Shown piece after piece: positions 27,470 to 33,995 of a stretch of 64,000 bases of DNA; position 1 is the first letter of the stretch; each line of letters opens with the position of its first letter. This DNA is from Histomonas meleagridis 2922-C6/04-290x (Eukaryota; Protista; Parabasalia), in contig JAANOX010000234.1 in assembly GCA_020184695.1 (NCBI GenBank), forward strand, positions 21,455 through 85,454, in the 5' to 3' direction. The notes beneath the pieces were generated by a model, which had not been told where the DNA came from, made no database searches, and saw only the letters and a program-made list of their open reading frames with translations. A program made the position numbers and the translations under genes.

Positions 27470-30400
27470 TTAATTGTTTGATGCATTATTATTATAACCG
27501 AGCGAATTAAATTCTTTTTCATAAATCCATTTCGTCCTATATTGTTCAAATGGGAAAAATTGGGGATTTCCTTTTTCATCAGTGGCCGTTACCCCGAATC
27601 TAACCGAAACCGATGTGATTCTTAACGGCTTTGAATAAACGTTCGTTCCCTTTATAGAAATTATTTTTTCTCCAATTACAGAACCATTCTTTTTTGGAGC
27701 TAACGATTTTACTTTATTAGCAAAAATACATACAAATTCTTCATTTGGATATTTAATATATATGTGATCATTATACATTTGAATAATTTGACCTTGTTTT
27801 CCATTAAAGTCTACTAAATCTCCAAAAAATAATGGGAAATTTTCTTCATCAATCATGTGTGGTTGATTTTGAAGTTTCCCTATGATTTGATCATCTGTGA
27901 CTGATTCTATTTGATTATCTTGTCTAATTACGACATAGTTTGATGCGTTGGTTTGTATTACAGTTGATGGAATTCCTGAATTAAGTTTAACTAAATCATA
28001 TGGATAATATTTTATTCGTTTCATTTTTTTATTGCTTTTCGATTTTTTCGAATGTTCTTGTTTTGACTTACCAATATGTTTATCATTATTATTATCTGGA
28101 GTAACACTATCCGTTTTGTCTTGCGTAATTTGTTCAATTGTTTTTGCTATAATATCTTGTATATCTTCAATTTTTTCCTGGCTTTTAATTTTACTTACCG
28201 TATTTTTAATTTCGCTATCTGTCATTGGTTCTCTAATTGTTTGGATTTTTTGATTTGGCTGACGAAGTATTCGAATTTCTTTGATAAGTTTTGTTTTCTG
28301 CTGAGATTGAAGTGGTATTTGTGTATTCTGTTGGGGAAGCGCAATTTTGGTTGATTCTTTATTCTGCTGTAGTGATTGCGGTTGGATAACAAATTCTTTG
28401 GACAAATGCTCATTATGGGATAGAACTTCTTTCGTTTGCTGCGGTATTTCTTTAATTATTTGAATATTTTGTTGCGTCTGTTGTTGAGGAGGTATTTCTT
28501 TAATTATGTGAATATTTTGTTGAGGAGGTATTTCTTTTGTTACATGAATGCTTTGTTGTGTTTGTTGTAGCTGTGGTATTTCTTTTATTACGTGAATATT
28601 TTGTTGTTTCTGTTGTTGAGGAGGTATTTCTTTAATTATTTGATTATTTTGTTGTTTCTGTTGTTGAGGAGGTATTTCTTTTATTACATGAATATTTTGT
28701 TGCTTCTGTTGTTGCTGTGGTATTTCTTTTATTACGTGAATATTTTGTTGTTTCTGTTGTTGAGGAGGTATTTCTTTAATTATTTGATTATTTTGTTGTT
28801 TCTGTTGTTGAGGAGGTATTTCTTTTATTACATGAATATTTTGTTGCTTCTGTTGTTGCTGTGGTATTTCTTTTATTACGTGAATATTTTGTTGTTTCTG
28901 TTGTTGAGGAGGTATTTCTTTAATTATTTGATTATTTTGTTGAGGAAGTATCTCTTTTATTATTTGATTATTTTGTTGAGGAGGTATTTCTTTTATTACG
29001 TGAATATTTTGTTGCTTCTGTTGTTGAGGAGGTATTTCTTTTATTACGTGAATATTTTGTTGCGTCTGTTGTTGAGGAAGTATTTCTTTAATTATTTGAT
29101 TATTTTGTTGAGGAGGTATTTCTTTTATTACGTGAATATTTTGTTGCTTCTGTTGTTGAGGAAGTATCTCTTTTATTATTTGATTATTTTGTTGAGGAGG
29201 TATTTCTTTTATTACGTGAATATTTTGTTGTTTCTGTTGTTGCTGTGGTATTTCTTTAATTATTTGAATATTTTGTTGTTTCTGTTGTTGCTGTGGTATT
29301 TCTTTTATTACGTGAATATTTTGTTGTTTCTGTTGTTGAGGAGGTATTTCTTTAATTATTTGATTATTTTGTTGAGGAGGTATTTCTTTTATTACGTGAA
29401 TATTTTGTTGTTTCTGTTGTTGCTGTGGTATTTCTTTTATTACGTGAATATTTTGTTGTTTCTGTTGTTGAGGAGGTATTTCTTTTATTACATGAATATT
29501 TTGTTGCTTCTGTTGTTGCTGTGGTATTTCTTTTATTACGTGAATATTTTGTTGTTTCTGTTGTTGAGGAGGTATTTCTTTAATTATTTGATTATTTTGT
29601 TGAGGAAGTATCTCTTTTATTATTTGATTATTTTGTTGAGGAGGTATTTCTTTTATTACGTGAATATTTTGTTGCTTCTGTTGTTGAGGAGGTATTTCTT
29701 TAATTATTTGATTATTTTGTTGAGGAGGTATTTCTTTTATTACGTGAATGCTTTGTTGTGTTTGTTGTTGAGGAGGTATTTCTTTAATTATTTGAATATT
29801 TTGTTGTTTCTGTTGTTGAGGAGGTATTTCTTTAATTATTTGAATATTTTGTTGTTTCTTTTGTTGCTGTGGTATTTCTTTAATTATTTGATTATTTTGT
29901 TGAGGAAGTATCTCTTTTATTATTTGATTATTTTGTTGAGGAGGTATTTCTTTTATTACGTGAATATTTTGTTGCTTCTGTTGTTGAGGAGGTATTTCTT
30001 TTATTACGTGAATATTTTGTTGCGTCTGTTGTTGAGGAAGTATCTCTTTTATTATTTGATTATTTTGTTGAGGAGGTATTTCTTTTATTACATGAATATT
30101 TTGTTGTGGCTGTTTTTTCTGTGGTATTTCTTTTGTTACATGAATGTTTTGTTGTGCCTGTTTTTTCTGTGGTATCTCTTTAATTATTTGATTATTTTGT
30201 TGAGCAGGGATTTCTTTAATTATTTGATTATTTTGTTGAGGAGGTATCTCTTTTATTATTTGATTATTTTGTTGAGGAAGTATCTCTTTTATTACGTGAA
30301 TATTTTGTTGCTTCTGTTGTTGAGGAGGTATCTCTTTTATTATTTGATTATTTTGTTGAGGAGGTATTTCTTTTATTACATGAATGCTTTGTTGTGTTTG

Positions 30401-33400: not shown

Positions 33401-33995
33401 GGCAAGGAGCAGGATTATAACTAATTGGCATGGTACTGTTGAGATGCTTTTGACTGAGGTCATGTGTAGATTTAAGTTTTTCATAATCAATGTGTGGATA
33501 ATGTTTTACATAAATTTTTTTGTTTTTTACATCGACTGCAATGACTTGCCCAGGGTCTCTTCTATTAATGCGAATTATTTTACCTGGAGTAAATTTATAA
33601 AAACGAATTGAAGATCCAAAATTAATTACATTATTTTTAAAATCTTCAGATATCGTAATATTTCCCTCTACCAATTCCAATAGAGCTTCTTTATCTGTAG
33701 CTTCTATTTGAATAATATTTTCTCCATTTTGAAAAAATGAAATTGATAATATGGAATCTATTTTTTTCATTTTTTTTCTTTTTCTCGCTAATGCTACAAA
33801 AAATTCATAGGGGTTTCCTTGTTTAACATGAATTTCATAAATTGGTGGGGTGCCTTTTAATATTAATTGATCTTGTTCTCTATAAATTCCAAGTTTTACG
33901 CTATCACATGTTAAGGGTATAGATGGGCGAATCAATTGAGATAAAGTAAGAGATCGATTTGTGTTTTGATTCGAAGAAGAATTGGAAAAGATCAT
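27470..33995 (-). CDS. SPT5: Divergent Spt5 (DSIF) homologue, about 2,170 aa, with a giant repeat insertion; the two track ORFs are one gene frameshifted inside a tandem repeat near 31980-32035
   Basis: NGN: PPIYEIHVKQGNPYEFFVALARK...SILSISF...IIQIEA...LVEG. KOW1: FTPGKIIRINR...GQVIAVD...YPHIDYEKLK. KOWx-4: YYPYDLVKLNSG...IDEENFPLFFGDLVDFNGKQGQIIQMYNDHIY. The same 24-aa repeat ends one ORF and starts the other. Confidence 0.8.
28440..30500 (-). repeat. Mixed 36/48-bp coding tandem array (IKEIPPQQNNQI / IKEIPPQQQKQQNIHV), roughly 45-50 units
   Basis: Directly visible repeated ggtatttcttttattacgtgaatattttgttg units. Confidence 0.95.
31550..32290 (-). repeat. 72-bp (24-aa) tandem repeat, 10 copies: NNTMSQTSTSAIQIKSKNDEAKLQ
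   Basis: Near-identical units. One copy (about 31975-32045) has several lengthened T runs that shift the frame. Confidence 0.95.

Follow-up and report, generated by a model that had tools for sequence, protein, structure and literature searches.

The window analysed here is a stretch of 64,000 nucleotides (nt) from Histomonas meleagridis 2922-C6/04-290x (GenBank assembly GCA_020184695.1, contig JAANOX010000234.1, positions 21,455 to 85,454 of the forward strand), to which all positions below refer. Its minus strand carries a single Spt5-family gene, for which the list of open reading frames (ORFs) and their translations gives an ATG at 33995 and a stop codon at 27470-27472. The locus is a divergent but genuine Spt5-family member of a parabasalid protist, whose linker, normally short and flexible, has grown to about 1,700 Q/N-rich and tandem-repeat residues. 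Residues 1-297 comprise the NGN domain and the KOW1-linker, an insert of 1,693 residues follows, and the final ~170 residues form KOWx-KOW4 and a KOW5-like barrel. A first-pass annotation, made from the letters alone, had proposed an Spt5 homologue recognizable at both ends; its coordinates are exact, and profile, fold, and homologue evidence supports the proposal.

27470..33995, minus strand: whole gene, 6,526 nt as assembled and 6,513 nt (2,170 codons plus stop) without 13 extra bases (ORF list and arithmetic)

In the assembly, the gene is divided into two minus-strand ORFs, namely ORF A (33995-32022, 657 amino acids (aa)) and ORF B (32017-27470, 1,515 aa). This division had already been pointed out, but the two frames differ, and continuity requires that an aberrant 85-nt repeat copy at 31979-32063 be an error. 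Since single proteins of relatives match both ends, the two ORFs are taken as one gene: the Tritrichomonas foetus protein P0001 (714 aa) matches ORF A at an expect value (E) of 9e-29 and ORF B at E 3e-9, and P0002 (711 aa) matches both as well, ORF A at the N-terminus and ORF B at the C-terminus (E 7e-12 for ORF B). The current annotation as two hypothetical proteins needs correcting. Overall, it is fairly likely that the locus is one gene for a divergent Spt5-family protein of ~2,170 aa, belonging to the clade of T. foetus TRFO_38761, with an expanded, tolerated tether and an ORF split caused by an assembly error.

Identification of the two conserved modules

The four domains that tie the protein to Spt5 are the following.

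33600..33848, minus strand: NGN domain (~aa 50-132), from Pfam Spt5-NGN at aa 52-111, the family profile against human SPT5, and AlphaFold2 (AF2) with Foldseek
33126..33593, minus strand: KOW1-Linker1 (~aa 135-290), with the HIDYEKL motif, from the profile match running as far as human SPT5 residue 407, crystal 4ytk, and Pfam KOW1_SPT5 in relatives
27707..28003, minus strand: KOWx-KOW4 double barrel (ORF B ~aa 1339-1437), from phmmer against the Protein Data Bank (PDB), the family profile, and crystal 5oho
27521..27673, minus strand: third barrel, KOW5-like (ORF B ~aa 1449-1499), from AF2 strands (E132-180) and VIA-align, with a weak sequence-level match

Taken alone, the N-terminal part yields little in conventional searches. 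The Pfam Spt5-NGN match is below threshold (17.8 bits against a gathering threshold (GA) of 22.4, E 0.003), no Pfam KOW domain is matched in the protein by itself, and the N-terminal 300 aa have no match among PDB sequences. A homologue search by indexed words came up empty for ORF A residues 1-300, and with T. foetus P0001 as the query it returned only two relatives; discovery of the family therefore needed an exhaustive HMMER search of 1.84 billion representatives, which gave 50 homologues, 17 of them at E <1e-10.

A profile (A1) based on the alignment of 26 N-modules, from this gene and 25 homologues, matches human SPT5 residues 166-407, i.e., NGN and KOW1, at E 5.5e-22. It also matches yeast and Komagataella (K.) pastoris Spt5, plant RDM3/SPT5L, and archaeal Spt5, with E from 5.5e-22 (human) to 1e-5 (archaeal), and ten of the 26 modules have a Pfam KOW1_SPT5 match. 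For residues 1-300, the AF2 model (predicted local distance difference test (pLDDT) 84) retrieves Spt5, archaeal Spt5, and NusG: the first 23 PDB matches are Spt5 chains, over 225-260 columns, and the KOW1-Linker1 crystal 4ytk is found at rank 24 (TM-score TMt 0.72). The protein thus has the NGN domain of the Spt5/NusG superfamily, followed by at least one KOW (KOW1-Linker1). All six family-invariant residues of the N-module are kept, and the motif YPHIDYEKLK, compared with PRIDYDRIK in the first-pass annotation, falls on the family-invariant D170/Y171 and is aligned with human PRIDYDRIK in the profile. E98, the conserved glutamate of the V-E-A strand, is also retained, and it would presumably have a role in Spt4 binding.

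The C-terminal part is more readily recognized, and its reading as KOWx-KOW4 plus a KOW5-like element, given beforehand for the last ~180 aa, is borne out. With phmmer, the C-terminal 250 aa match K. pastoris Spt5 598-718 (E ~1e-4). The family profile of C-modules (A2) reaches E 4.6e-13 with Spt5 and E 1.5e-4 with the human KOWx-KOW4 crystal 5oho; the hidden Markov model (HMM) checks proposed earlier for both ends have, therefore, given a family-profile match at each, together with the sub-threshold Pfam signal at the N-end. The AF2 model of the C-module (pLDDT 90.9) consists of three small beta-barrels, and the leading 29 Foldseek matches are all Spt5. Finally, VIA-align superimposes model residues 14-188 on human SPT5 530-754/758 (KOWx-KOW4-KOW5) with Z 15.4-15.7, and on yeast Spt5 as far as residue 854/862, against Z <=8.9 for unrelated barrels; 5oho alone gives Z 14.8 and a root-mean-square deviation (rmsd) of 2.1 Å over 103 residues. 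The KOWx-KOW4 unit of canonical Spt5 is, therefore, present. The third barrel is modelled at pLDDT >90 and, because the superposition runs to human residue 754/758, it occupies the KOW5 position; its sequence-level support is weak, so 'KOW5-like' is the safe name.

An origin of the Spt5 resemblance in chance or low complexity, with the ORFs as unrelated hypothetical proteins, might be read from the sub-threshold NGN score, the lack of a Pfam KOW, and the empty word-based search. It is refuted by the number and significance of the homologues, by the E-values of both profiles, and by two AF2 models that each retrieve Spt5 chains alone at the top, and its probability is negligible.

Canonical Spt5 features that are missing

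The first-pass annotation saw no acidic N-terminus, KOW2-3, or C-terminal repeat region (CTR, which CDK9/Bur1 phosphorylates in canonical Spt5), and composition, a six-frame HMM search, and the position of the protein end agree. The first 50 aa contain three D/E and five K/R, with NGN beginning at ~aa 50, and no acidic N-terminus is, therefore, present. As the protein ends 14 aa after the C-module, it has no CTR, and no CTR-like motif occurs anywhere in it. An HMM of the middle KOW domain of the relatives, searched against the six frames of 27300-34200, found no such domain (best E 0.6).

The further claim that the insert replaced KOW2-KOW3 as a specific event is not supported. In 18 relatives with both modules, the linker measures 37-327 aa and cannot be aligned between relatives. 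Fifteen of them carry a single KOW2-like domain in it, whose profile best fits human KOW2 413-455, and it is lacking in P0034, P0047, and P0050. Because relatives carry at most one KOW2-like domain, the absence of KOW2-KOW3 is largely a family trait, to which this gene has added the loss of the last middle barrel and the lengthening of the tether.

The insert

The insert consists of Q (23%), I (14%), N (12%), and K (11%) for the most part, with only five G, no C, and no W. In order, it comprises a 265-aa N/Q-rich segment, ten 24-aa units, a 343-aa Q-rich segment, a 690-aa KEI-P-P-Q-Q array, and a 143-aa K/Q/I-rich segment.

32310..33104, minus strand: N/Q-rich non-repetitive segment (ORF A aa 298-562; N 23%, Q 18%), with 0 in-frame stops
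31548..32290, minus strand: ten 72-nt units (24 aa, S/T-rich), from Tandem Repeats Finder (TRF) and a unit-by-unit listing
30518..31546, minus strand: Q-rich non-repetitive segment (ORF B aa 158-500), from composition, with no in-frame stop, whereas the other sense frames have 27 and 19
28448..30517, minus strand: IKEIPPQQ array, 47-48 units of 12 or 16 aa (36/48 nt), from TRF and unit counts
28019..28447, minus strand: K/Q/I-rich segment before the C-module (ORF B aa 1191-1333), with no in-frame stop, whereas the other sense frames have 4 and 18

This matches the earlier description of Q/N-rich sequence, ten S/T-rich 24-mers, and about 45-50 IKEIPPQQ units. The insert is clearly coding, because its three non-repeat segments have no in-frame stops, against 10-24 expected from base composition and 4-42 in the other sense frames. 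For example, in the N/Q-rich segment the other sense frames hold 19 and 42 stops, and 21.6 are expected.

The differences between IKEIPPQQ units are biased to third codon positions, and pairwise pN/pS is 0.15-0.27, a value that is down-weighted since the units share ancestry; counted per column, the variable sites at the three codon positions number 5/7/8. The 72-nt array is nearly perfect, with eight of ten copies identical, one with a few base substitutions, and one of 85 nt, and it is, therefore, young or homogenised.

Searches with the repeats returned little of use. On the 24-aa array (ORF B aa 10-157), Pfam Beta_helix (PF13229) reaches 43 bits (E 3.4e-11), which is probably a periodicity artefact of identical units, and Pfam MgtE_N on the IKEIPPQQ array was treated as an artefact of the same periodic kind. 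An Atlas feature search with the IKEIPPQQ array found only generic P/Q-rich repeat proteins, with scores <=0.83.

The array in the insert is the largest tandem array in the window, the genome having ~28% GC. A second coding array is located at 12985-13825 on the plus strand (129-nt units, ~6.5 copies, 80% match), within a 1,520-aa ORF at 11812-16374, so in-frame repeat arrays recur in the window. A 650-aa antisense ORF (28592-30544, plus strand) also lies inside the IKEIPPQQ array; that frame has one stop across the array, and the ORF is a repeat by-product rather than evidence for a gene.

A probably artefactual frameshift in the 72-nt array

The two ORFs meet within the 72-nt array, across which both translate the same 24-aa unit in the same register.

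31979..32063, minus strand: aberrant 85-nt repeat copy, with 13 extra bases in A-rich runs, giving a +1 frameshift that divides the gene into ORF A (657 aa) and ORF B (1,515 aa)

The assembled stop in this copy is at 32022-32024, and without its 13 surplus bases the length becomes a multiple of three (6,513 nt; 2,171 codons with the stop counted). Short-read contigs from Logan, for two DNA runs (X1, X3) and two RNA runs (X2, X4), were placed on 30500-34100. They span 30500-31583, where DNA and RNA contigs cover the Q-rich segment at 100% identity, and 32261-34100, with zero differences from the assembly over both parts. The 85-nt copy is found in no contig from the four runs, the depth of its bin being fully explained by a spurious 19-nt match, yet run X3 keeps repeat variants at depths of 5-53. 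Since low-depth variants are kept and this copy is not, the 85-nt copy is probably an assembly or polishing error. The 72-nt unit collapses in the contigs at ~10-13 times single-copy depth. The collapsed unit has ~13 times the depth of its flanks in DNA run X1 and ~10 times in X3, which may reflect different copy numbers in the two samples or merely noisy k-mer depth.

If the frameshift were real, the locus would be a pseudogene broken not long ago, or else it would have split into two products, a 657-aa protein with NGN-KOW1 and a low-complexity tail, and a 1,515-aa repeat protein ending in KOWx-KOW4-KOW5. The assembly does carry the 85-nt unit and its stop, and a truncated product has precedents in relatives with an N-module and a tail (TRFO_04960, P0023, and P0004). 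Nevertheless, the unit differs solely by insertions in A-rich runs, which are typical of long-read consensus errors, it is missing from the contigs of both DNA and both RNA runs while variants at depths of 5-53 persist, and ORF B remains uninterrupted over 1,515 codons, ending in a conserved, well-folding C-module. A real frameshift is, overall, unlikely.

A family of Spt5-like genes in parabasalids

The named matches are all from Tritrichomonas, and the others are metagenome or Sequence Read Archive (SRA) proteins, the Logan-derived relatives carrying the accessions SRR29449369, ERR13935973, ERR14127506, and SRR31611284. In T. foetus, at least five genes have the NGN-KOW1 module, namely TRFO_38761, which is the best match (34% identity), TRFO_04960, TRFO_01045, TRFO_10645, and TRFO_21867; at least five such genes in one genome are, therefore, possible. 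Tritrichomonas musculus contributes M9Y10_004911 and M9Y10_001598. The literature searches made here found no published description of multi-copy Spt5 NGN-KOW1 genes with differing C-termini in one genome.

The C-termini of the family fall into four types. The first is short and ends after the KOW5-like barrel. The second is long and RD/RS-rich, with a terminal barrel pair in some members, such as the KOW6-7-like pair of TRFO_10645. The third consists of the N-module and a low-complexity tail only (T. foetus TRFO_04960, P0023, and P0004). In the fourth, one member is fused to capping-enzyme domains.

This fusion (P0031/P0057, T. musculus M9Y10_001598, 977 aa) joins NGN-KOW1, at residues 4-319, to capping-enzyme domains: mRNA_cap_C (31.8 bits, GA 26.5), a ligase-like nucleotidyltransferase, and a guanine-N7 methyltransferase (26.1 bits, GA 26.6). 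It is present on several contigs, one of 11.4 Mb, and in the tree T. musculus supplies its sister too, a short-type Spt5-like gene (98/91). Such a protein ties Spt5 to capping.

In a maximum-likelihood tree of 31 N-modules, the Histomonas gene groups with TRFO_38761, P0002, P0007, P0010, and P0011 with a support of 95/98, on a terminal branch of 1.92 against ~0.7 for its neighbours. Its clade membership, and its N- and C-modules in one polypeptide ending after the KOW5-like barrel, are those of the short type if the frameshift is an artefact. In contrast, it lacks the KOW2-like barrel in a linker of ~170-240 aa that characterizes this clade, its own linker being 1,693 aa with no barrel detected. 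Relatives bridge their modules with as few as 37 residues, so tether length appears to be unconstrained, and none of them has the insert. The gene is better described as a paralogue, the alternative offered in the first-pass annotation, than as the organism's Spt5, considering the copies of T. foetus and the long branch within a well-supported clade.

No synteny was found with the P0002 locus, whose neighbours are Zip and PP2C; here they are DnaJ and topoisomerase II. In the window, the neighbouring genes are unremarkable: topoisomerase II (22698-26894, minus strand), DnaJ/Hsp40 (34075-35211, minus strand), a BspA-type leucine-rich repeat protein (36253-37392, minus strand), a Rab-like GTPase (22056-22661, plus strand), and a protein kinase (38407-41826, plus strand).

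A tolerated tether or a docking platform

By homology with structures of RNA polymerase II (Pol II) and DSIF, NGN-KOW1, together with Spt4, would sit on the clamp and upstream DNA, and KOWx-KOW4-KOW5-like would sit near the RNA exit and the stalk. In the family, these modules are connected by an unconserved tether of variable length (37-327 aa), with at most one KOW2-like barrel. Here, the tether has probably grown through Q/N-rich low-complexity expansion, together with replication slippage or unequal exchange of the 72-nt and 36/48-nt in-frame arrays, and the translated insert would most likely be a disordered spacer that loops away from the elongation complex. Most likely, the insert is a slippage-expanded tether that is tolerated rather than required.

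A functional role had been suggested instead, namely that the insert is a phosphorylatable scaffold substituting for the C-terminal domain (CTD) of Pol II. In a fuller form, a disordered, Q-rich insert on a Pol II-bound Spt5 paralogue would be a selected multivalent scaffold that recruits processing or chromatin factors in place of CTD heptads or the CTR. The Pol II of Trichomonas vaginalis, which is not the organism studied here, lacks CTD heptads (PMC2475620). The protein itself has no CTR, the insert is retained as an ORF, and the differences among its IKEIPPQQ units are skewed towards synonymous and away from non-synonymous variants. The plant RDM3/SPT5L matched by the N-module profile shows, moreover, that an Spt5 paralogue can carry a repeat platform; its repeat region recruits AGO4.

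The insert gives this proposal no support, because W and the heptad-like motif SPxSP are absent from it and its 1,693 aa contain only six S/T-P sites. It likewise has no WG/GW, the AGO-hook of SPT5L/KTF1, and the IKEIPPQQ consensus unit contains no S, T, or Y to be phosphorylated. No relative has the insert, in the clade or in the family, and other parabasalids, expected to be heptad-less too, keep linkers of 37-327 aa. The 72-nt array, with its eight identical units, is either very young or homogenised, and Atlas and Pfam give generic repeat look-alikes only. A selected scaffold is, therefore, improbable, and the same low probability is given to the specific proposal that the 47-unit IKEIPPQQ array and the 24-aa S/T-rich array are a selected docking platform, assuming recruitment roles of the CTD or CTR in an organism with heptad-less Pol II.

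Several points weigh against the favoured reading of one intact gene with a tolerated tether. Neither a read nor a contig bridges the 85-nt copy, and contigs are unable to prove its absence. The RNA-library contigs include N-terminal, mid-insert, and C-terminal parts of the gene, but they break at both arrays and may thus come from one mRNA or from more than one. The distinct IKEIPPQQ variants, each counted once, comprise 11 synonymous and 18 non-synonymous changes, where 18% synonymous are expected (p 0.011, omega-like ratio 0.37, with no correction for transition bias), which is suggestive, not decisive, of some constraint on the peptide and of more than a pure spacer. Lastly, the Spt5 evidence for this organism comes from this locus, and binding to Spt4 and Pol II is inferred from homology.

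The finding shows that a tether of almost any kind, 37 to ~1,700 residues long, can link the two Pol II-contacting halves of an Spt5-type factor. KOW2-3 is dispensable across the parabasalid family, which informs on the Spt5 contacts that are essential. Tritrichomonads hold several Spt5-like paralogues with diverse C-termini, including the capping-enzyme fusion, and this points to sub-functionalised elongation factors in organisms without CTD heptads. The biology of the family may be more interesting than this single gene.

Comparison with known systems

The closest system is the group of T. foetus TRFO_38761 (OHS95065.1, 714 aa, 'NGN domain-containing protein'), P0002, and P0011, which share the N-module at 32-34% identity (E 5e-23 and 9e-29). 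The group also shares a C-module ending just after the KOW5-like barrel, and the lack of an acidic N-terminus and of a CTR. It differs by a linker of 171-238 aa with one KOW2-like barrel, against 1,693 aa and none here, and by a branch that is ~2.6 times shorter.

Canonical Spt5 (human SUPT5H/DSIF p160, yeast, and K. pastoris) has the same order of NGN, KOW1-Linker1, KOWx-KOW4, and KOW5, by profile and fold. Compared with it, the gene has no acidic N-terminus, KOW2-KOW3, or CTR and, compared with metazoans, no KOW6-7 either; the ~1,700-aa insert sits where KOW2-3 would be.

Plant SPT5L/KTF1 (RDM3, the Pol V-specific Spt5 paralogue, PDB 8hyj_W), which the N-module profile matches at E 5.8e-16, also has a very long repetitive and presumably disordered region. 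Its repeats are C-terminal and made of WG/GW AGO-hook motifs, whereas those of this gene are internal and contain no W, and a specialised polymerase is unsupported here.

N/Q-rich low-complexity insertions are known in conserved proteins of AT-rich protists, e.g., Plasmodium and Dictyostelium. The insert resembles them as an in-frame, A-rich, N/Q/K-rich expansion between conserved domains, but it differs in its exceptional size and in being built partly of defined units of 12/16 and 24 aa, rather than of homopolymer runs.

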